Shown piece after piece: positions 1,871 through 28,680 of a stretch of DNA of 64,000 nt (positions are counted from its first letter, which is position 1; each line of letters opens with the position of its first letter). Made by a program: the position numbers and the translations under genes. This stretch comes from Heteronotia binoei. Taxonomy: Eukaryota. The notes beneath the pieces were generated by a model. It was not told the origin of the DNA, did not search any database, and saw only the letters and a list, made by a program, of their open reading frames with translations. Location of the stretch: positions 15,252,001 through 15,316,000 of the forward strand of contig NC_083235.1 in NCBI RefSeq assembly GCF_032191835.1. Reading direction: 5' to 3'.

Positions 1871-1977
1871 CTCTCCATTCATGGCCCTCATGGCATCCTT
1901 AGCATCCTCAGGACGGCAATAGGTTATAAAACCAAAGCCCCTGGACCGCTGGGTTTCCCGGTCTTTCACTACAACCA
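1871..1977 (-). CDS. CIRBP-like gene exon 3 (RNP1)
   Basis: cccgcAG|TG GTT GTA GTG AAA GAC CGG...AAT GGA GAG|GTgagt; 107 nt, phase 1 to 0. Confidence 0.95.
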
Positions 1978-2639
1978 CTGCGGGTGGGAAAAATGAACAA
2001 GGTATCAGCCAGACATTTCAACTATAATCAGGAGCACATGAATATCTTGATACAGGCATCAGAAGTAGCACCGATTTTGGATCTCTAATCTTCAGAATCA
2101 TCCAAGCAACAAGATTCACTAATCAGTATTTAATACTGCAGAAGAGTAGCCTGCTGCACAAGTTAGCAAAACTGAGCATCACTACTTATGCACATTTATT
2201 CCCAATCACTTGCTTAGTAAATAGCTGCTTCTACTGGCTCACGTACTGGGGCAGTCTCCCACCATATGAATGGATGCAGTCACATTTGCTTTCTGTACAT
2301 TCTGAAACTCAATGATCACTTTCAAACTGAAGGAGTGCTTTGGTGAGAAAGCTAGCCGCTGCTTAATAATCATCAGCTCCAATCTACATAAGTCTGGCTT
2401 GACATGCTGCATGGATGGACACCGTTCTGGACATCAAGAGATGGGAATGCCAAGCAGGTGGCAAAGTGGAAGAAGAAAACCAGCTGCAAATATGGTTTGA
2501 GTTTTATCAGTTGAGCTTCTACAAAATCTGGCAAGCTATCTGAATTAACCCTAAAGATACTTCCAATTCCCTCAGAGCTGATATTCAAATTGTTACTCAC
2601 ATGTATGGAAGGCCCAAACTTACTGGAAGATATTGTTAG

Positions 2640-2850
2640 GGAGAGCCAATGTGGTTAGAGCAGTGTGTATAGCATGTCAGATTAGGTTCTGTGAGACCCA
2701 GGTTTGAATTTCTATTCCGCTATGGAAGTTTGCTAGGTGACTTTGGGCCAGTCACACACTCAGCTTAACCCACATAACAGGGTTGTTGTGAGGATAAAAT
2801 GCCAGAGAGGAGGCTGATGTCTGCTACTTTGCATCCCTGCTAGAATGAAA
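2640..2850 (+). mobile_element. Old CORE/MIR-like tRNA-SINE (similar remnants at about 12150-12290, 13050-13200, 33060-33150, 52100-52300)
   Basis: Degenerate A/B boxes and core motif gggttgttgtgaggataaaatg. Confidence 0.6.
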
Positions 2851-3389
2851 GGTGGGTACTGAGAAAGTTAATTATCCAAAATGATATTAGTCTTAGAAGT
2901 GGGAATTTCAACAGGCTTGAATTAGCAATGGGTAAGTGGAAAGAACTGCAGAGGAGAATCAGTAAGATACTAATGAGGCTCAAATAGATACAACAGAGCA
3001 ATAAGGATTTTAAAAAGAAGGCTTCCTAAAGCGTATCTGAGCTGTTATACAATCTATACTCATCTGCAGCAGTGGCCCCACTCGCAAGTGAACTTTGCTC
3101 CCAATAAGAACCCCACATGCGGATTTGCTACTGGAGCCCTCGCTACCATCTAGGTTGGCACACCTTATTCACACAACACCCGCCCTGTAACTATTAACGT
3201 GGTGCCTTTCTTTTGAGTGTCAATCACCAGGCAGAGATGATTTCTTCCCCACTCACACTTTGCTCACCTTTATATTTGCTGTGCTGAAAAGTGTGGCTTT
3301 CGCTGCCATTCTAGTTGGGAGTACGAATATCAATAATCTGGTCTTTACTGGGCCAGGAATTACTCTGAGGTCAGCATCATGTTTTAAAT

Positions 3390-3716
3390 CAGGGGTCTCC
3401 AAAGCTGTGTCTACTGACACCCTTCCTGACACCCACCGAGTTCTTTCACAAAGGGGGTAGGGACAGGGGAGGCTTTTGTCCAGCAAGGCTTCCGAATGAC
3501 CGCTGGAGATCTGATTGGCTCTGCAGGCTTTTTTTTTTTTTTTTTTAAACCTGCTCTGGCAGCAGCTACCACCACAGCACAAGGAGCTTTACTGTGTGAC
3601 TGAAGGTAAGCTGTGGTAGTCATTTGATGTCTGGCTACATCTCCTGTGGAAGCCATTTTGTGGCTGCCCCAACACTGTAAGAATTCTCACAGGCTCAAAA
3701 AAGTTGGGGACTCCTG
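3390..3716. mobile_element. hAT-type non-autonomous transposon
   Basis: TIR caggggtctccaa / ttggggactcctg with perfect 8-bp TSD ttttaaat. Confidence 0.85.
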
Positions 3717-4138
3717 TTTTAAATAAACGCAAACAATGGAAAACACTGCTGATGGGACTGACTCAAGACTCTTACAGTGAGGAAGTACATTAACGCTGCA
3801 AGTGAAAGCAAACTGGTAAAGACGAGGACATGAAAGTCAGCGCAGAACAAGTAAGCAACTCTCTTAAGCAGACTGTGCTGCTATTAAAGAATAGGTGCAT
3901 TTGATGAAAGGGGTAACATTTAAGTGAACTGTAAAAGAAACAGTATTTTGCATCTTTAGATTAATCTAAAACCAAGACTAGTAAAAGATGGGTATTTATT
4001 AACTAGTAATACAACCCTGGGAAATCAGGTGCCATACCATGCACTGTACATGGTTTATTTCTGTCTCACACTGTGTTTACGCTACTTCTGGACTAACACT
4101 TCAAGATGTAGGTCAGTCAAATGTTTCTTTTATTTTTA

Positions 4139-4332
4139 TGAACATATGAAGCTGGCTTATATTGAATCAGACCCTCGGTCCATCAAAGTCAGTATTGTCT
4201 ACTCAGACTAGCCAGCAGCTCTCCAGGGTCTCAAACTGAGGTTTTTCACACCTACTTGCCTGGACCCTTTTTAGTTGGAGATGCTGGGGATTGAACCTGG
4301 GACCTTCTGCTTACCAAGCAGATGCTCTACCA
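4139..4332 (-). mobile_element. tRNA-derived SINE, Squam2-like
   Basis: Reverse complement of the 31026-31237 copy, with A and B boxes. Confidence 0.82.
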
Positions 4333-4741
4333 CTGAGCCACCGTCCTTCCCCTAAAAACAAAACAAAAAAAGCCCCTTGCATGTTAAGAAAATCTGAACT
4401 TCCCCTTTATTATTGTTTTGTATGCACAGATGGTTTTTTAAAAAGTGGCACAGCTTACTACGATATAGAATTGATTAAGTATAGCAGCCCAACAAATTAA
4501 GGAATGTCCAGTTATCAACAGTGCCTCCTCTCTTGGGTAATAATGGAATCGACCTTTCACTCTGGCATTATTCATTTTTAACCATAATATTCCTGCAAGT
4601 GTGTAGTGCTTAGCTTAATTAAGCAATGCACACAATCCCAAAACTTTCATCCTTGCCATGTATCATGATACTGAAATGTGGCAAAGCCAGCCATTGTGAT
4701 ACCCTAGAGATACAGACGAGGCTGATGACACCTTTTCTCAC

Positions 4742-4844
4742 CTTCTGCAATGTCTCCATAGGGAGAGAACAACTGCTCCAGATTCTGCTCATTGGTGTCA
4801 AAACTGAGCCCTCCAATGAAGAGCTTTCCTTCATCCGATGCCAT
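4742..4844 (-). CDS. CIRBP-like gene exon 2, coding part (ATG, RNP2); whole exon is 4742-4855
   Basis: tttgtccacAG|attattccaaaATGGCATCGGATGAAGGA...GCA GAA G|GTgaga; 103 coding nt. Confidence 0.95.
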
Positions 4845-19600: not shown

Positions 19601-22099
19601 CACTGTTTCTATTAATTTGGCATGGTGGTTAAGTGTGCAGACTCTTATCTGGGAGAACAAGGTTTGATTCCCCACTCCTCCACTTGCAGCTGCTGGAATG
19701 GCCTTGGGTCAGCCATAACTCTCGCAGTTGTCCTTGAAAGGGCAGCTTCTGGGAGAGCCCTCTCAGCCCCACCTACCTCACTGTGTCTGTTGTGGGGGAG
19801 TGGAGGACTGGATATAAACCCAATGTTGTTGTCTTATTACTGCATTGTAATATAGAATAATTATACAACTCACATCCCGGCTGCTAACAGGCCATGGACC
19901 AGTCCTGGTCTATGGGTTGGGGACCCCTGAACTAGATGACACAACTGCAGTAAGAACAATTATCAAAGGAAACCACTTACTTCATAGCATGGATTCAAGA
20001 GCTGGAGAAGCGGTTTCATTCCCATTCCAGTACTTCACCGCAGAATGGCATAACACCCTTCTCTCTTCTCACCTGCCAAAAACAGGTCAGTGTCACTAAC
20101 TCAAGCTCATTCAAAAACTCACTTCATTTCATAGATTATAGGTCTGACAGGATACTCCAGGGCTAGGTGATGCTGTTCACCTAGTCCTGAGGAGATTCCC
20201 CCAAGTTAATGTGGTCAATTTTTCTCCCTCATTTAGATCATCTAAAACCACATACCAGTGGAAAAATTGGCAAGTGGGAACAAAAGCCTCCCATACCCAA
20301 AGTATGCTGTGCTGAGAGAAACCTTCTCAACAGTCCAAGTTCTGCATAAGGCACTATTATAAAGTCTTGGACAAGACAGCTGGATGAATCCAAGTATTGT
20401 TTGGTTGGTTGCATTTCCCCATTTTTGGAAAGCAGATATCAATCACAGCAGCCAGCCAGGCCCTCCCCCAGGATAAAATTGCAGATTCAGACCAAGTTCT
20501 CCAGGGGGTCTGTAAAGACCCCAGGATTAGCCCAGTGAGTTTGTCAAAAAGCAGTAAGAACCAGTGGTTTGCTGTGGCCATAAGAATGGAGCTCTGTGGG
20601 AGAGAAGATGCAGACATGAGCAAAAGAGTTACCTCGAAATACAGGACTATTTCCACAAATGAACTAGCCAAGAGCAGCTTTCGTCTCACATGGATCGCAC
20701 TGAAGGAGGCACAACACACTTCGGGGGTCTCCAAGGAACACTGGCTTCCACACGCTAGCAGAGAATTCTCACAGTGTAAGAACAGGACAGAGCTAACTAC
20801 AGGTAGGCCCATCTAGGCACACCAACACCAGTTCCACCTCAACCCTGAAGCCTCAAGTCCCCAGATGTTGAGAGCTTCCTTCTCTAACAGCTCATCTGCC
20901 AAAGCTGAGTTTCTCCAAACCAAATAGGACATGCCATCCAACTTTAGGAAGCATTTGCATAAACCAAGAGGGCACCTTCCTTCCCGGGTTCACCCTAGCA
21001 ACAGCAATACAGCAGTATTACAATTGCAGCAAGGGACACCACCACGTGTTAACTGGACTCATTGTTTGAACCCTTAAAAGGGCCAGGTATTATGACAGAG
21101 CACAGGGTGTTTTACCACTGTACACATTTGTGCTGAGCACCCCACATTCTTATTTCCCTCTGTAGCACCAACTCCCAAACCAGAAAAATAGTGATGAACC
21201 TTCAAAAAAGCAAGCCAGTTAAAAGTTACTATTTGAAGGCCAAACCAGGACACTCAAGATCTTCAGCCACCAATGTCTTGAGGAATTCCACTGGGAATCA
21301 GTGCTTGCAAGACAACCACCACCACCACCTTGTTTTTAGCCACTACCCACTTAAGAGATAAAACCAATTCCCCAGGACTGCACTGTGGTGTAGATAAGCC
21401 TCCCAACATTCCAGGGAATCAAATGCTGGCAAATGCACAAGGGGGGGGGGGGAGGGGAGAGAATCTTTGCCTGTATGTATCCATGTGGGCCTTAAGAGTG
21501 GTTTGATGTAAGGTTACTCAGATACAATAGGATCACCAACATTACAGTGTATAGCATTAGGCCATACAGCAAGGGGAGCCAGTGGTAGCTCTCCAGATGT
21601 TTTTGCCTACAACTCCCATCAGCCCCAGCCATTGGCCATGCTGGCTGGGGTTAATGGGAGTTGTAGGGGAAAAACATCTGGAGAGCTACCGTTGCCCACC
21701 CCTGAAAGAACAGGCAGATTTCTCCATTTGTTCTGCCTTGTGTTGCACAGTATTACAGTTTTCATTCCTATCAGTTTCTTGGGAATTGGGAATTCTTGGG
21801 AATCTATCATTACCTGTTAACCAACTTTGGGCATTCTCTAGATGAGGCGAAACACATTTTTAGCTTACTTGCCCCTCAGCTATCTAAGTTGTGCGGTGCA
21901 ATGCGATGTCAAACGTCACGAGCAGAGAATTGTTTCAGATGGGATTTTAATGGGCTTCGTAAAGCCAAAAACTCAGTACAGGAACTTCCTTATCCACTTC
22001 AAAATACAATGTCAATGGAATTATGCACGCGTCTTCCAGTAAAAAAAGGACAATATAAACAAACATTTTCAAGAACCTCTCAAAGCGTCAGAGTCCTAG

Positions 22100-22555
22100 G
22101 TTTACTATACAGTAAAACAGACTTTATTGTGATCAATGCGAACCATTTAACCCTTTCAGTAACACCAAAGTGGCTTGCCTGTCACCCTCCCTTGTGATGC
22201 TAAGAGTTAAACTCCAAAAAGTGCATCGCACTTTTTCAGAAGTAATTTTTGCTCAGCTTCCGGTACTCTTAAGGGCCCCATTTAAGTCAAGTTAAAAGAA
22301 AACTTCAGGCTGAGAAAGACAAATAAAACCAGATTTCAAAAATGCTTTAAAACCACTCTTGAAAAAAAGAAATTCTTGAGCAAAGTCTAAACAGGCCATC
22401 TTGTAGAGGAAGCTTTCGGGCTGCATGTGACAAAAAGCTATATAGGGGAAGATACAAGTAGGTAACTAAAGATTCAGCGAAGCTCCAAAAATCTTTATAA
22501 ATACGGCCATTGGAAGGACGATCTTGATTCAGGAAGGATTTTTACTCGGTGTGAG
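22100..22555 (-). other. RBM3: RBM3 exon 7 (3' UTR)
   Basis: Acceptor cttcttgtcctcAG|ctcacacc. Contains GATCGTCCTTCCAATGGC, which I recall from human RBM3/CIRBP 3' UTRs. Ends at the AATAAA below. Confidence 0.85.
22123..22128 (-). terminator. RBM3: RBM3 polyadenylation signal AATAAA
   Basis: tttatt on the plus strand, followed on the minus strand by GT/T-rich sequence. Confidence 0.7.
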
Positions 22556-22949
22556 CTGAGGACAAGAAGCAGGTACAATCATAAAGGCACAAGCATATGG
22601 ACATGTTTGCAGCATTTTCACCATGCCTAGACTTTTTTAAAAGATTAGTGAGGCTAGGAATCTCAAGGCCCTCCCCCAAATTAGCACTCCGTAGCTGGGC
22701 TGTACAATTTTGAAGTTAACAGTTCTTAAGGTCCAACATGCATTTAAGTTAACGTATCGGTAATCTGAACTGATGCCTGCAATGTTTAGACTGAGTCAAC
22801 GGCAGGTGCTCAAAATCCTTCTTTTGAGCTTAGCTACCCAGTAGTGAGCTACTACTACAGCCACTACCTGTTGCAAGTTGGAACACTGCACGTTACAGGT
22901 GTTTTGGACAAGTAGGAAATTTGCAATCCCTTTCCCAGAGCTACCTACC

Positions 22950-23013
22950 TCAGTTGTCGTAGCTGTCTCTGTAAGAGCCTCCTGAAGAGTAGCGGTCATA
23001 GCCTCCCTGACTT
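22950..23013 (-). CDS. RBM3: RBM3 exon 6, coding part with stop (exon ends 22949)
   Basis: gttttcAG|A AGT CAG GGA GGC TAT...GAC AAC TGA G|GTaggt; 64 coding nt. Confidence 0.95.
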
Positions 23014-23091
23014 CTGAAAACAAAGGGTATGTGTTTTGCACTTGCTCAGTGAAAGTCAAAACTCTGAAACAGAGCTCATTGTCACAATTAC

Positions 23092-23167
23092 CTGCCGTAA
23101 TCCCGGGAACTACTATAACCTCCACTTCTGCTGTCGTAGCGACCACCATAGCTTCTGTCTCCACCAC
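23092..23167 (-). CDS. RBM3: RBM3 exon 5 (RGG/SY-rich)
   Basis: catcttgtAG|GT GGT GGA GAC AGA...TAC GGC AG|GTaatt; 76 nt. Confidence 0.95.
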
Positions 23168-23275
23168 CTACAAGATGAAGATGATTGACTGGTGAGCAGC
23201 CACCAATGGAATCAACCCTTCCCTCGATTAATCCAGAGCCAGTCAACAACGGCCACCACCCTTCTTCATGCTCAC

Positions 23276-23381
23276 CTCTGGAATAGCCACGGCCTCGGCC
23301 CCTTCCGCCAAAATAACCACCTCTGGATCCACGTGAAGATTTCCCTGCATGGTCAACTCTGATCTGGCGCCCATCTACAGA
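23276..23381 (-). CDS. RBM3: RBM3 exon 4
   Basis: gattAG|TCT GTA GAT GGG CGC CAG ATC...TCC AGA G|GTgagc; 106 nt. Confidence 0.96.
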
Positions 23382-24935
23382 CTAATCACACACACGAAAA
23401 CGTTTTAATGAGGGCTTTCTAGATATCATGGGAGATTGACTTGCCAAGCCTCCTGCCATCTTCAACTGCAATGAATGGACCTGGGCTGGGTTATTAACTC
23501 TAGATTACACCTATGCAACCCCTGAACTGATCAACTATACCTGCACCTGCAATTTGGCCACAAGTGGATTAAAAGTTGAAGGAATGCCAAATTTAGTACC
23601 TTGTTTTTGAGTAAGCATGCATATAATCATACTGGTAGCCTCACTTCCACCTTGCAGATCAGGCCAGATGGGAGATCTTAGGCAAAATGTTATGGATCAA
23701 GCAGAGATTTAAACCCAGATTCTAGATTTAAACATTCCAGTTGCTGCACATCAAAATTCATAGCAAGTCTAAAACTGCTTTGAGATCTAAACATATGCCA
23801 CAGTGCTTTTGGATAGCTTGAAAGGGCACAGCTTGGGCCACCTGAGATTTCTGAAGCATAAGGAAAATTTAGTGTCCTAAGGCGGCATTTTCCATCTCTG
23901 ATACAGGAACAGTGAGACATTTAATTCATCGTAGAATGGGGAAGAGAGAAGGGAGTAAGTAATCCATCTGTTAGGAGGGACTACAGAAAGAAGCTCTGAA
24001 CTAGTTTGGTATTTTTCTGATGCTTTTATTTTTCAAACAAAGCCTTTCTACCTGAACTAAAATAAGCTCAGCAGCCATGCATGCACACTCACCAACTCAT
24101 CCAATTTCGTCCATAGGTCGAACACTTAAGTACTGTCTTAGAAAGGCTGTTCAACATCAATTTGATCCACTTTCACGTTATAAATTATGGGCCAACCCAG
24201 ACATAAAAATTGGGGAAGGGGGAATGTTTTTATATGGAAGGCTTGGACCAATAGGGAGATTCATACTCAAATCATGTTTAGGATATACAAGACACACAGT
24301 AACTCTTTAGCAATGTTGAGTCAAGTGTCTAACTCACAGAACGTGACTTCTAAACGTATGCTTTCGGCATATCTGGTATTTTAGTTCTTCTGGAAGTCTT
24401 TGCTCATATCACTTTTGTGTTAGAAGATCCACTGATTTTTGAGAATGCTGCTGTACTTTATCAGCCTTGTTACATTACACAAATGCCCACCTCAGCATAT
24501 CAATGGACTGAGAAACTCAGAACTTTATCAATATTTGAATGCATGGCATATATACAGCAACTGCATATGGTTTTTAGATATTTGAGAACTTTAATAGAAG
24601 CTTCCACCGCTATTTAATAGAATCTGCCACCACTATTATATTTTCATCCCTACTTTATTTTTTTTAATTGTCACTGGATTTGGAGTTTTTTGCTTTTTTT
24701 TTGAAAGAAAAATAATTTTTAGGCCATTTAGGAAACACCTTGTCCAACAGGTACATCTGTCTCTTCTAAAACAGATTAGATTAGCCAGCTGTACTTTAAG
24801 CAGCTTCTCATGAATTACTGCTTGATCCAAGATTTTAAAAATAACAGCTAATCAGTCATAAAAGCACAAGTATACGGACAAGCTTGAAGCATTTTCACCA
24901 CTCCTAAACCAATACGAAATTTAAGCCATCCTTAC

Positions 24936-25042
24936 CTCCCCATTCATGGCTCTCATGGCATCTGACGCATGCTCAGGATTGGAAAAGGTGATAAAGCCAA
25001 ACCCTCTTGATCTCTGTGTTTCTTTGTCCTTGATCACTACAA
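24936..25042 (-). CDS. RBM3: RBM3 exon 3
   Basis: ggttctAG|TT GTA GTG ATC AAG...GGG GAG|GTaagg; 107 nt, contains RNP1 RGFGFITF. Confidence 0.97.
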
Positions 25043-25209
25043 CTAGAACCACAAAACAGAAAGTTACAAAAATCATTTGTAGAAGAGCTGGATTAGAGTT
25101 AAGTAGCACTTTAGAAACCAACAAAATTTCTCAAGGTATAAACTTTTGAGAGTCAATAGAATGAAAATGTCTTTGAATTAATCTCAACATCCACACAGAA
25201 TATTCTTAC

Positions 25210-25312
25210 CTTCAGAAATAGGACCAAAAGAGCTGAAATGCTGCTCCAGACCTTGTTCATCAGTGTCAAAGTTCAACCCCCCAACAAACAGCTTTCCTTC
25301 TTCAGAAGACAT
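25210..25312 (-). CDS. RBM3: RBM3 exon 2, coding part (whole exon 25210-25328)
   Basis: ttctgtAG|acacctcttcaccatcATGTCTTCTGAAGAAGGA...GAA G|GTaaga; 103 nt. Confidence 0.97.
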
Positions 25313-26449
25313 GATGGTGAAGAGGTGTCTACAGAACAACACACACAAAAATATGCGCTAGAAAAACAAATGTTGGTTGATCTTTTCAGCTAAGCATAAG
25401 AGCCACATGCTCCTTACTTATGTACAAGATGACTGAAAGTCTAGATATGAACACCATACAACACATTTCTTTGTGCATCTGTCCCCACCGCCCAAATCCT
25501 CTGTTCTCTACAGCTGGCCATATTACAATACTTCTGATTCAGTGGCAAGCAAAGCAACATGGTTTTACAAGATTACACTCAGTAGAAACTCAGGTCACAT
25601 CAAGCAAAAATAAGACTATTTTGTGTAACCCTACAAAAGCACATCTGGCGGAAGCAGCAGCTACGTGGCAGGAACAGCAGCCACATTGGCTTCCAAGCCT
25701 CATCAAGGCATTGGGACCCATTTTTTCTACAATATAATCCTACTTTTAACCCTGTCTGAAGAAATATGTCTACATTCTGTTTTGAGTCACTAAAAAAAAG
25801 TATGAGGAAAGGGTTGCTAATTTTTCTTTAAAAACCTAGAAAAGAGCTAGAAAAAGCCAGCACTACAGCAAATTGTGATTATAGCTTATATAGCAACTAG
25901 CACCTGACTAGTACCCAAGTTCAAACCTCCACTCACCATAAAAATTGCAAGGAGTCCACAGGTTAGCCCTTCTTCTCATCAACCTAAACCTAACCTACCT
26001 CAAACCTGGTCCAGAGCTCCTTGGCAGAATGGAAAAGTGAAGCACACTAAATAACCCAGTGTGCAAGCTGGCATCTATAAATGTAAACTGCACGCCTAAC
26101 TTTTACTTCTAGAGCTCTCATCTTGTTTTAAGCCACCTCAGGGGTCACCTGGAGCATCAGTCCAGCAGTGGGCTGCAAACCCCCAAGTGTGGCCTAGCCT
26201 GGTAATCACCTGGGATGCAACTGATCTCACAGTGACAGAGATCACCTCCCTTGGAGAAACTGGCTGCTTTGGAGATCTGCAGCATTGTACGCCTCCTGAA
26301 CTTTCCCTCCACAGGAATTTCCCAATGTGGTGTGAGCAACCCTAGACTCCACTGAGCTACATAGGGACTGAGGGCTGGGCCTTCAACCTCCACTTCCGCC
26401 TGTCACGTTAGGAAGATCAATTATGTCTCACTTCCCACAGCTACTAAAG

Positions 26450-27195
26450 GGGTGGCTAAACTGTGGCTCAGGAGTCCCATGTGACTCCTTCACACATCTT
26501 GCATGGCTCTCAAGGCCCTCACTGCTCCATTGGCTAGCTTGAAGAATACATTTTAAATTAAAGTTGCTTTCTTTAAACATCTCTCATCTATTTTTCTCCC
26601 TTCCTAGGGGGTTGAAAGATCTGTGTTGGAAAATACCTGGAAACCTTTGGGAGTGAAGCTGGGAGACAGTAGGGTTTGAGGGAAGGGAGGGGCCTCAACG
26701 TGGTATAATGCCAGAGTCCACCATTCAAAGCAGCCATTTTCTCCAGGGGAGCTGATCTCTGCCAGCTGGAGATCAGTTGTAAAAGTATGAGATCTCCAGG
26801 CCCCACCTGGAGGCTGGCAACCTTATGCCTTCCTTCCTAACTTGCAGCTCTCAAACGTCTGATGTTTATTCTATATCAAGGGTGTCCAAACTGTGGCTCG
26901 GGAGCCACGTGGCTCTTTCACACATATTGTATGGCTCTTAAAGTCCCCACTGCCCTGTTAGCTGGCAGCTTGGAGAATGCATTTAAAATTGCTTTCTTTC
27001 CACCTCTCCCTGCCTTCTCCCTCGCCATCTATTTTTCCTTCCTTCCTTCATCTGACAGTGTCCTGTGCCTCTCAGACAGATGTTATTCTTGTATTTCGGC
27101 CCTCAGACATCTGATGTTTCTGTCTTGTGGCTCTCAGGCATCTGACTTTTATTCTATGTGGCTCTTTTGTTAAGCAAGTTTGGCCACCTTTATAC
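26450..27195. mobile_element. Nested hAT MITE copies plus a GGGTTGCCA-family fragment in RBM3 intron 1
   Basis: Termini ggggtggctaaactgtggc and aggggtgtccaaactgtggc...gtttggccacc. Confidence 0.7.
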
Positions 27196-27199
27196 TGCG

Positions 27200-28220
27200 T
27201 GCCGGGGGGGGGGGGCATTCACGCCTCCGCGCCTTCTTATCACAATAAGGAAGTCCGATTTCCTGCACGGAGAGGGGAGAAAGCGCGTCTGTGGCCTCGC
27301 AGAAATCCGGCTTCGTCGACGAGCGAGGCCGCCTCCATTTCCCCGCCTCGAGCGCCATCTTGTTCACCCCGAGCGCTCAGCCGAGCAGCGTCTGTAGAGA
27401 ACCCAAGATGGCGGCCGAGGCACGGCCCAGGGGGCGACGCGTTTCCCACCAACCCGGAGGAAACACTCGACTTTTGGTTTTTCAGCCCCTCGACTTAGGA
27501 GCAGCCCGCCGAGCCCTGTGCAGCCCCCGCCCGAAAAAAAAAAAAACCCACACCATTGCCTTCCTCAGTGCTAGAAACAGCGTTCCCGCGCTAAGCCGCA
27601 TGCGCACAGCCGTTAGCGTCCTCGCGGGCCGCTCCCGTCGCGCATGCGCTCTCGAACCACCGCGCTGGGCCACCCACGCTCCCCCTTCCCTGTTCTTTTT
27701 CTTACGACGTCACTTTCACTAACGGTCGCTACCGCCGAGACCACAGCTAAAAAACACGTTTTCTTTACTCCTGAAAGGGATAACAAACATACCCAGAAGG
27801 GGCGGGGGGGTGTAAAAAAAGGCTTTACGATTATTTCCTTCCCAACTCACCAGATGACGCTTACCAAGCTGGAGCTGCTGGAAATGCGGGCCGAGGCGCC
27901 ACCCGCGCGACGCTTATATAGGGGACCGCCCACTAATGCTGGTCACGCGACCGTTACTCCGCCCTCTTTTTATGCTACGCATGCGTCCAGGGGTGGTTGG
28001 CGGCCAACGGTTGTAACTGAGACTGGGGAAAAGAACAAAAAAAAAAAAGTTACCATCCGGGCTTTGATTCAACTGACTTTCTCCAAAAAGACTCCCGAGT
28101 GCGTCATCCGGGGGTCTTGCTTGTCTTGCGCAACCGCCCTGTTCCCTAGAAGAGGTTGAACAAGAGAGCTTCACGCTGCATCTGCTTCCGGTTCCCTTTT
28201 AGAAACCCACGTGGGAAGCA
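27200..28220 (-). promoter_or_regulatory. RBM3: RBM3 CpG-island promoter with TATA box
   Basis: TATATAAG (27913-27920), YY1-type motifs (27352-27362, 27405-27415), NRF1 palindromes (27595-27606, 27640-27649) and E-box cccacgtggg (28207-28216). Confidence 0.82.
27851..27890 (-). other. RBM3: RBM3 short non-coding exon 1 (two candidate donors: exon ends 27865 or 27851)
   Basis: Inr-like GCATTTC about 35 nt downstream of TATATAAG. Donors are TTG|GTAAGC and CTG|GTGAGT. Confidence 0.75.
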
Positions 28221-28324
28221 AAAAGCATAGCTTTCCATTTTTTAAAATTCAATTCAATGCTATAACATAGCATTCAAATTTTTTTTTTAAATGACATTGG
28301 TCGAGTTGGAGTCGCCTTTTCGTT

Positions 28325-28680
28325 GCAGTAGAATCATAAGATTTGGAAACGATCTCCAGGATCATCTAGTCCTCCAACCTCCTTGCACAATGCGGGAAAC
28401 TCACAAATTTGTTGTTGTTCAGCCGCACAGTCGAGTCCGACTCTTTGCGACCCCATGGACAAAGTCACGCCAAGCCCTCCTGTCTTCCACCATCCTCCGA
28501 AGTCTGCTCAAATTCGTGTTTGTTACATCAGTAAAGCTGTCCAGCCATCTCATCTTTTGCCCTCTCCTTCTTTTGCCTTCTGTCTTTCCCAGCATATCTT
28601 CCCCTAAATTCACAGGATCCTCATTGCTATCAGAGGGCCATCTAGCCTGTTGCAAAACCTCCAAGGAAGGAGACCCCATC
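28325..28680 (-). mobile_element. CR1 3' end interrupted by a BovB (RTE) 3' fragment (about 28410-28593)
   Basis: BovB-like LGKTEGKRRRGQKMRWLDS..EDRRAW with an (aac)n tail. The flanks rejoin the sequence seen in the 11385-11860 CR1 copy. Confidence 0.82.

Follow-up and report, generated by a model that had tools for sequence, protein, structure and literature searches.

The induction of RBM3 is neuroprotective, which makes this cold-shock gene one of medical interest. In the gecko Heteronotia binoei two introns of RBM3 carry closely similar sequences, and the question raised by this locus is whether the two act together as one regulatory element or whether one of them is simply a copy of the other. 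A preliminary description of the DNA had favored the first answer. According to that description, a single cis-element would gate both an intron 3 poison exon and last-intron splicing, acting either as a thermosensitive hairpin or as a site of RBM3/CIRBP autoregulation. If true, RBM3 would possess a shared thermosensing or autoregulatory element. Here, we address this proposal in a stretch of 64,000 nucleotides of H. binoei DNA (the window), using sequence comparison with other reptiles, RNA-seq reads and RNA folding. The copy in intron 3 is referred to as copy 1 and the copy in the last intron as copy 2.

Results

Identity and exon structure of the gene

The minus-strand gene surrounding both copies is RBM3. 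This identity, and the assignment of the two copies to intron 3 and to the last intron, had been proposed from the letters alone and is upheld by exon translations, a protein search and RNA-seq junctions. Exons were compared piece by piece. The protein query spanned exon 4, intron 4 and exon 5, a stop-free stretch of 97 codons, and it retrieved RBM3 proteins of reptiles, birds and mammals. The translations of the five coding exons are each contained exactly in P0162 (Heteronotia binoei RBM3-like X1), an exact containment shown by no other squamate protein tested.

Exon boundaries (Table 1) were taken from raw RNA-seq reads labelled as the same species (samples X21 and X22), in which exon depth is about 100–200. 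The junctions 25210^25042, 24936^23381, 23273^23164 and 22949^22555 were all present. The exon 6 acceptor is a NAGNAG choice, both outcomes of which (23092^23013 and 23092^23010) occur in the reads. The TGA stop codon of RBM3 is complete one base before the last donor, which places the last intron in the 3'UTR. A CIRBP-like paralogue stands in tandem with RBM3 and, apart from the two exons listed in Table 1, is located beyond the start of the window.

Table 1. Positions of RBM3 features and of related sequences in the window (position 1 is the first letter of the window).
Feature	Positions	Strand	Evidence or remark
Copy 1 (57 nt), probable secondary copy, intron 3	24853..24909	-	Repeat match; absent at orthologous site in Paroedura and Eublepharis; zero RNA-seq coverage
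Copy 2, probable ancestral source sequence, last intron	22576..22632	-	Orthologues in Paroedura, Eublepharis, Sceloporus, Phrynosoma and three turtles
Insertion carrying copy 1	about 24850-24914	-	~61-65 nt relative to Eublepharis and Paroedura
Conserved block across the last 3' splice site	22436..22678	-	~123-125 nt of intron plus first ~120 nt of exon 7; eight-species alignment
Candidate branch-point A	22582	-	Context TTTAT, at the end of copy 2 nearest the acceptor; lies 26 nt before the final intron base; read from sequence
G-run GGGGGAGGG in the intronic part of the block	22669..22677	-	In all eight reptile sequences; longer version in turtles
RBM3 coding exons 2-6	22949..25312	-	RNA-seq junction reads and exact translations in P0162
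RBM3 exon 2 (from ATG)	25210-25312	-	Junction reads
RBM3 exon 3	24936-25042	-	Junction reads
RBM3 intron 3 (1554 nt, fast-evolving, hosts copy 1)	23382..24935	-	Junction 24936^23381
RBM3 exon 4	23273-23381	-	Junction reads
RBM3 exon 5	23092-23164	-	Junction reads
RBM3 exon 6	22949-23013, or to 23010 through the NAGNAG acceptor	-	Junction reads
RBM3 last intron (393 nt, 3'UTR)	22556..22948	-	Junction 22949^22555 in all four runs
CIRBP-like paralogue exons 2 and 3	4743-4844 and 1871-1978	-	tblastn; translations match P0107 and P0065

A direct repeat in two introns

The two copies form an ungapped direct repeat of 57 nt, identical at 47 positions (82%), with copy 2 situated 2277 nt downstream of copy 1 on the same strand. 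The preliminary description had recorded minus-strand stretches of 44 nt (24856-24899 and 22579-22622). Their coordinates are correct and this core is identical at 39 of 44 positions, the similarity being longer than had been claimed. The placement relative to splice sites was also accurate. The last base of exon 3 is 24936, so that copy 1 begins about 36 nt into intron 3, and the first base of exon 7 is 22555, so that copy 2 ends 22 nt before the acceptor AG.

A degenerate pattern that combined the two copies and tolerated up to three mismatches matched only these two sites in the 64 kb and none in 100 dinucleotide-preserving shuffles. Relaxed blastn detected no third copy of the element in the window, even a weak one, nor a further copy of the larger block to which copy 2 belongs. 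The RBM3 repeat is real and not due to chance. The earlier remarks that the window contains no other copy, and that transposon hallmarks are lacking within it, both hold.

Conservation of copy 2 and absence of copy 1 in other reptiles

Nine other RBM3 loci of 13–23 kb each were compared, namely those of Sceloporus (L001), Alligator sinensis (L002), Apteryx (L003), Phrynosoma (L004), three turtles (L005–L007), Paroedura (L008) and Eublepharis (L009). The two iguanians, the two other geckos and the three turtles each carry the element once, in every case immediately upstream of the exon 7 acceptor, and no locus has more than one copy. In Alligator only the branch-point and polypyrimidine part is kept, within a last intron of 120 nt. 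In the kiwi (Apteryx) locus only exons matched; the element was not found there and nothing around it could be aligned.

Rather than being a unit of its own, copy 2 forms part of an uninterrupted block that begins at about 22678, crosses the acceptor and extends to at least 22436. The exonic part of this block, of about 120 nt, is 100% identical in all five squamates and 83–97% identical to turtle, and the intronic part, of about 123 nt, is 75–100% identical in squamates and 63–93% in turtle (30-nt bins, Heteronotia as reference). Immediately upstream of the block, in bin 22708-22679, turtle identity falls to 0.37. The non-coding sequence across the exon 7 acceptor is thus deeply conserved among squamates and turtle over bins 22678-22439. 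From gecko to gecko the last intron is 87–89% identical, compared to 53–68% over aligned columns for intron 3.

The candidate branch-point context at the 3' end of copy 2 fits the yUnAy consensus, reading TTTAT in squamates, TTTAC in turtles and TTCAC at the matching alligator position. The region of copy 2 therefore probably holds the branch point of the last intron, in agreement with the suggestion, made when the repeat was first described, that its 3' end sits at branch-point distance. The block is also partly common to RBM3 and its tandem CIRBP-like paralogue. The latter is expressed, and RNA-seq reads show the start of its exon 7 to be at least 85% like that of RBM3 over about 87 nt; reads of the paralogue have loose ends at 22557 and 22469 and carry a paralogue-type exon 6 end (SYRDNYDN-stop).

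The situation of copy 1 is different. It was not found in intron 3 of Paroedura, Eublepharis, Sceloporus, Phrynosoma, the turtles or the alligator, and in each other locus with the element the best match to copy 1 is the copy 2 site of that same species. The expectation that the motif would recur in relatives was therefore borne out for copy 2, which is kept in geckos, iguanians and turtles, and failed for copy 1, which is absent at the orthologous sites. Intron 3 itself measures 1554 nt in Heteronotia, 451 nt in Eublepharis, 1363 nt in Paroedura, 993 nt in Sceloporus and 1492 nt in Phrynosoma; judged by the spacing of blast hits, it is shorter than 100 nt in turtles and about 180 nt long in alligator. 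With lengths ranging from <100 to 1554 nt it is largely unalignable among reptiles. No blastn hit was obtained between gecko and iguanian intron 3 sequences, and conservation of this intron around a poison exon was not found across the reptile loci compared.

Splicing of intron 3 and of the last intron

Read depth in intron 3 was 0 in every bin of 23444-24899 in both X21 and X22 (0.98 in one bin of one run). At an exon depth of 100–200, the only junction involving this intron in the two samples was 24936^23381, and none led into its interior. Zero depth and the lack of internal junctions mean that no poison exon or cryptic site was seen near copy 1, where the preliminary description had placed a poison-exon event. 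A poison cassette of the exon 3a type was likewise not seen in X21 or X22, samples in which NMD was not inhibited and a poison isoform would be hidden. A possible cryptic acceptor, the CAAGCAG that follows copy 1 at about 38 nt, was considered and rejected for these samples, as no junction reads use it. Neither a function of copy 1 nor a detectable effect of it on splicing finds support in these observations.

The last intron behaves differently. Its coverage was about 2–3% of exon depth in X21 and about 13–20% in X22, and DNA contamination is ruled out as the source of this coverage by the lack of reads in intron 3. The last intron is removed less completely than intron 3, and to a degree that depends on the sample. 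This variation is compatible with regulated retention, which two samples do not prove. Since the normal stop codon lies one base before the last junction, neither splicing nor retention of this intron should trigger NMD. The earlier placement of copy 2 is upheld in the following respects: the sequence is within a conserved block, it has a UnA context suitable for a branch point, and the intron it belongs to is variably retained.

RNA folding and the possibility of a shared element

Six versions of the element, of 42–45 nt, gave minimum free energies of -2.8 to -5.9 kcal/mol, with z between +0.35 and +1.54 relative to shuffles, and two extended hairpin contexts gave z of +0.20 and +0.98. Stability above that of shuffled sequence was found in none of the six orthologous and paralogous elements and in neither extended context. 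The best hairpin, including the pairs drawn in the preliminary description, was then projected onto an eight-sequence alignment. Compensatory change was seen at 0 of 15 pairs, a count of low power given the few variable columns, and the covariation score was 0.107 compared to 0.114 in shuffles, likewise with few variable columns. The share of paired cells, 93%, is high as a matter of course, one of the aligned sequences having supplied the structure. In iguanians, one G-C pair of the hairpin is broken without compensation. A thermosensing hairpin, as had been drawn for both copies, is not supported by these folds and alignments.

An Rfam search of 21500-28500 at permissive thresholds returned nothing at either copy and otherwise only chance-level hits at E >1. 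A palindrome at 21595-21679 gave a below-threshold match resembling mir-5408. A snoRNA or other small RNA, which the ATGA...CTGA pair in copy 1 could bring to mind, was rejected: there is no Rfam match and no RNA coverage, and the CTGA is missing in copy 2.

These results bear directly on the proposal that both copies are one functional cis-element, thermosensitive hairpin or autoregulatory site, gating the intron 3 poison exon together with last-intron splicing. The proposal has the strength of a similarity far beyond chance, of a conserved copy 2 beside a variably retained intron, and of a copy 1 that is unchanged in a close relative (organism B); moreover, mammalian RBM3 intron 3 does hold a temperature-controlled poison exon (PMC10165353). 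However, lack of conservation in other reptiles, an outcome that the preliminary description had itself set against its proposal, is precisely what is observed for copy 1, which is missing from intron 3 of the two other geckos, the iguanians, the turtles and the alligator. No read or junction appears in an intron 3 that is itself not conserved in reptiles, and the hairpin behaves as shuffled sequence does, with a pair lost in iguanians. We therefore regard one element gating two events as very improbable.

Origin of copy 1

An alignment of the start of intron 3 in three geckos matches both flanks of copy 1 and leaves an extra segment of about 61–65 nt in Heteronotia only. As Eublepharis is the outgroup to both gekkonids, the most parsimonious history is one insertion on the branch of Heteronotia. 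The copy 2 of Eublepharis is identical to the ancestral sequence that had been inferred beforehand. Over 57 nt, copy 1 differs from this ancestral sequence at 7 positions (50 of 57 identical), Heteronotia copy 2 at 3 and Paroedura copy 2 at 2. The three changes that are particular to Heteronotia copy 2 are all lacking in copy 1, which was therefore copied early on the Heteronotia branch.

The 12% change in copy 1 can be compared to about 16% per lineage in intron 3 (from 68% identity between Heteronotia and Paroedura), and would fit drift at about the neutral rate; copy 1 has not drifted significantly more than copy 2 (Fisher p = 0.32). In organism B, whose intron 3 has diverged by about 3% from that of Heteronotia, copy 1 shows no differences, which says little since only about 1.6 were expected. 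On either side of the insert stand TATTG and GATTA, whereas Eublepharis has GATTG only once at this place, a resemblance that is degenerate and could be due to chance. The donor copy 2 also ends in GATTG, and the insert junctions bear no clean signature. The possible flanking duplication of 5 nt could be a remnant of the insertion, but it is too degenerate to carry weight.

It could be argued that copy 1 instead dates back to the ancestor of geckos or of squamates, with independent losses in Paroedura, Eublepharis and elsewhere. Copy 1 is indeed old, as it is free of the three Heteronotia copy 2 changes and has an A at position 39 in common with Paroedura copy 2. However, this history needs at least two precise losses; in Paroedura and Eublepharis alike the flanks align straight across the site, the short duplication that may flank copy 1 points to insertion, and no other lineage has any trace of copy 1. 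An ancestral copy 1 appears very unlikely to us. An origin of both copies as pieces of a dispersed repeat (SINE or MITE) that landed twice in the gene is the least credible, because, even if the window does hold lineage-specific repeats such as the palindrome mentioned above, copy 2 has orthologues and sits within a block conserved from squamates to turtles, no third copy exists in the 64 kb or in the nine loci, terminal repeats, poly-A and Rfam matches are lacking, and no RNA read fits two places.

Discussion

It is likely that copy 2 is the original, conserved sequence, and that copy 1 is a lineage-specific templated duplicate that drifts neutrally and has no detectable effect on splicing. 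In the ancestral state, copy 2 would have been part of the conserved block across the last 3' splice site of RBM3. About 60 nt of this block would then have been copied, in the same orientation, to a position 25 nt into intron 3 in the lineage that led to Heteronotia. Most likely this took place by templated insertion during the repair of a DNA break, the template being 2.3 kb away in the same gene, and copy 1 would have drifted about neutrally ever since, with no consequence for splicing.

Templated insertions and short local duplications are known from error-prone repair of double-strand breaks through MMBIR and polymerase-theta end joining (PMC8421209, PMC5466332, PMC7407515). Copy 1 resembles them in being a patch of about 60 nt in direct orientation, with a donor a few kb away, absent in outgroups and free of transposon features. 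It differs from them in that microhomology at its junctions is not clear, and 12% decay leaves the mechanism unreadable from the sequence. An RNA-templated origin from the pre-mRNA of the gene itself is also possible.

The mammalian precedent that could lend copy 1 a role is the temperature-controlled poison exon 3a in RBM3 intron 3 (PMC10165353, PMC10350819). Although gene and intron number are the same, the gecko reads contain no equivalent of exon 3a, reptile intron 3 is not conserved and is shorter than 100 nt in turtles, and the gecko copy 1, at about 36 nt from the donor, is not part of an internal exon. The mammalian exon 3a mechanism thus appears to be absent in this lineage. A more general caution follows for proposals of this kind: the similarity of two places in one genome does not amount to shared function unless each copy is conserved at its own site.

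Attention is thus shifted from the repeat to the block that contains its donor. Ultraconserved elements are found overlapping regulated splice sites in genes for RNA-binding proteins of the SR and hnRNP families, where they usually correspond to poison cassettes or to 3'UTR introns that trigger NMD. The RBM3 block is similar to them in joining about 120 nt of near-perfectly conserved non-coding exon to the adjoining intron, in a gene for an RNA-binding protein, over some 200 million years or more. Unlike them, gecko RBM3 has no evident NMD-sensitive isoform. The most likely role of the block would be to help set the efficiency with which the last intron is removed.

The nearest parallel described is the 3' end of CIRBP, in which vertebrate-wide conservation surrounds an alternative 3' splice site (the exon 7b/8 system; PMC11346455). 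Both genes belong to the cold-shock RNA-binding protein family, and both combine a conserved 3' splice site near the 3' end of the gene with variable processing of the last intron. The likeness is one of description, and there are differences: splicing or retention in gecko RBM3 should be NMD-neutral, and no alternative terminal exon appears in the reads. One possibility is that the exon 7 block is a functional splicing module controlling the removal or detention of the last intron in cold-shock RNA-binding protein genes of ectotherms, a reading that we put forward tentatively and at somewhat less than even chance. A further step, in which this block of about 245 nt would be an ancient control module of the last intron and the Heteronotia copy 1, as a transplanted piece of it with the branch-point region, would now tie the processing of intron 3 to the same factor, seems highly unlikely.

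The interest of the copy 1 duplicate itself is low. The exon 7 block is of more interest, as a testable candidate for the tuning of cold-shock RNA-binding protein expression in ectotherms, and the donor sequence of the RBM3 repeat may in this way offer a reasonable lead on how reptiles regulate these proteins.

Conservation at the Exon 7 Acceptor

The conserved intron end upstream of RBM3 exon 7 continues into the exon itself, which belongs to the 3'UTR. Across three geckos and two iguanians the first 120 nt or so of this exon are 100% identical, and turtle identity over the same stretch is 83-97% in 30-nt bins. This non-coding stretch is ultraconserved and adjoins the conserved intron end without a break. 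Within the last intron, the exon 7 acceptor is preceded, at a distance of about 115 nt, by a G-run (GGGGGAGGG) that is present in 8/8 of the aligned reptile sequences, with a longer version in turtles. HNRNPH1 has a role at mammalian RBM3, and by analogy the G-run could be an hnRNP H/F-type site.

Coordinates of the features discussed (window positions)
Feature	Position	Strand	Details
Tandem CIRBP-like paralogue	1871-4844	minus	exon 2, 4743-4844; exon 3, 1871-1978; extends beyond window start
Palindromic element	21570-21704
RBM3 exon 7 start	22436-22555	minus
RBM3 last intron	22556-22948	minus
G-run	22669-22677	minus
RBM3 intron 5 acceptor	23010-23013 / 23092	minus	NAGNAG
RBM3 intron 4	23165-23272	minus	108 nt
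RBM3 intron 1 repeats	26450-27160

The Paralogue and Repeats

RNA reads show that the CIRBP-like paralogue is expressed, that its C-terminal end is SYRDNYDN-stop, and that about 87 nt at the start of exon 7 are common to it and RBM3. Relative to the window, essentially all RNA reads carry a T>C change at the exonic positions 25017 and 22373. At two further exonic positions about half of the reads differ, with A>G at 24960 and G>A at 22553. These are strain or allele differences; for 22553 G>A, paralogue-derived reads are probably the source.

The palindromic element matches mir-5408, an Anolis family in Rfam, at 54.9 bits, under the gathering score of 90. Because the alignments to the geckos Paroedura and Eublepharis break there, the element probably represents a MITE-like insertion specific to the lineage, within or just past the 3'UTR. 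In intron 1, several direct repeats of families D2, D6 and D8 are spaced at about 425-430 nt and are accompanied by inverted repeats; they look like tandem or nested copies of repeat elements.

Alternative Splicing and Possible Intron Retention

At the intron 5 acceptor, 78- and 81-nt skipping junctions are both used, at about 60:40 in both RNA samples (X21 and X22), and the two products match the annotated protein isoforms X1 and X2, one residue apart. Intron 4 is in frame and without stop codons, and sits within a stretch 82-86% identical among geckos. Its retention would lead to a predicted 36-residue insertion in the glycine-rich region.

RNA coverage of the last intron differed about five-fold between X21 and X22, unlike that of intron 3, which was zero in both. 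This uneven coverage suggests that the last intron is retained or slowly removed in a sample- or condition-dependent manner.
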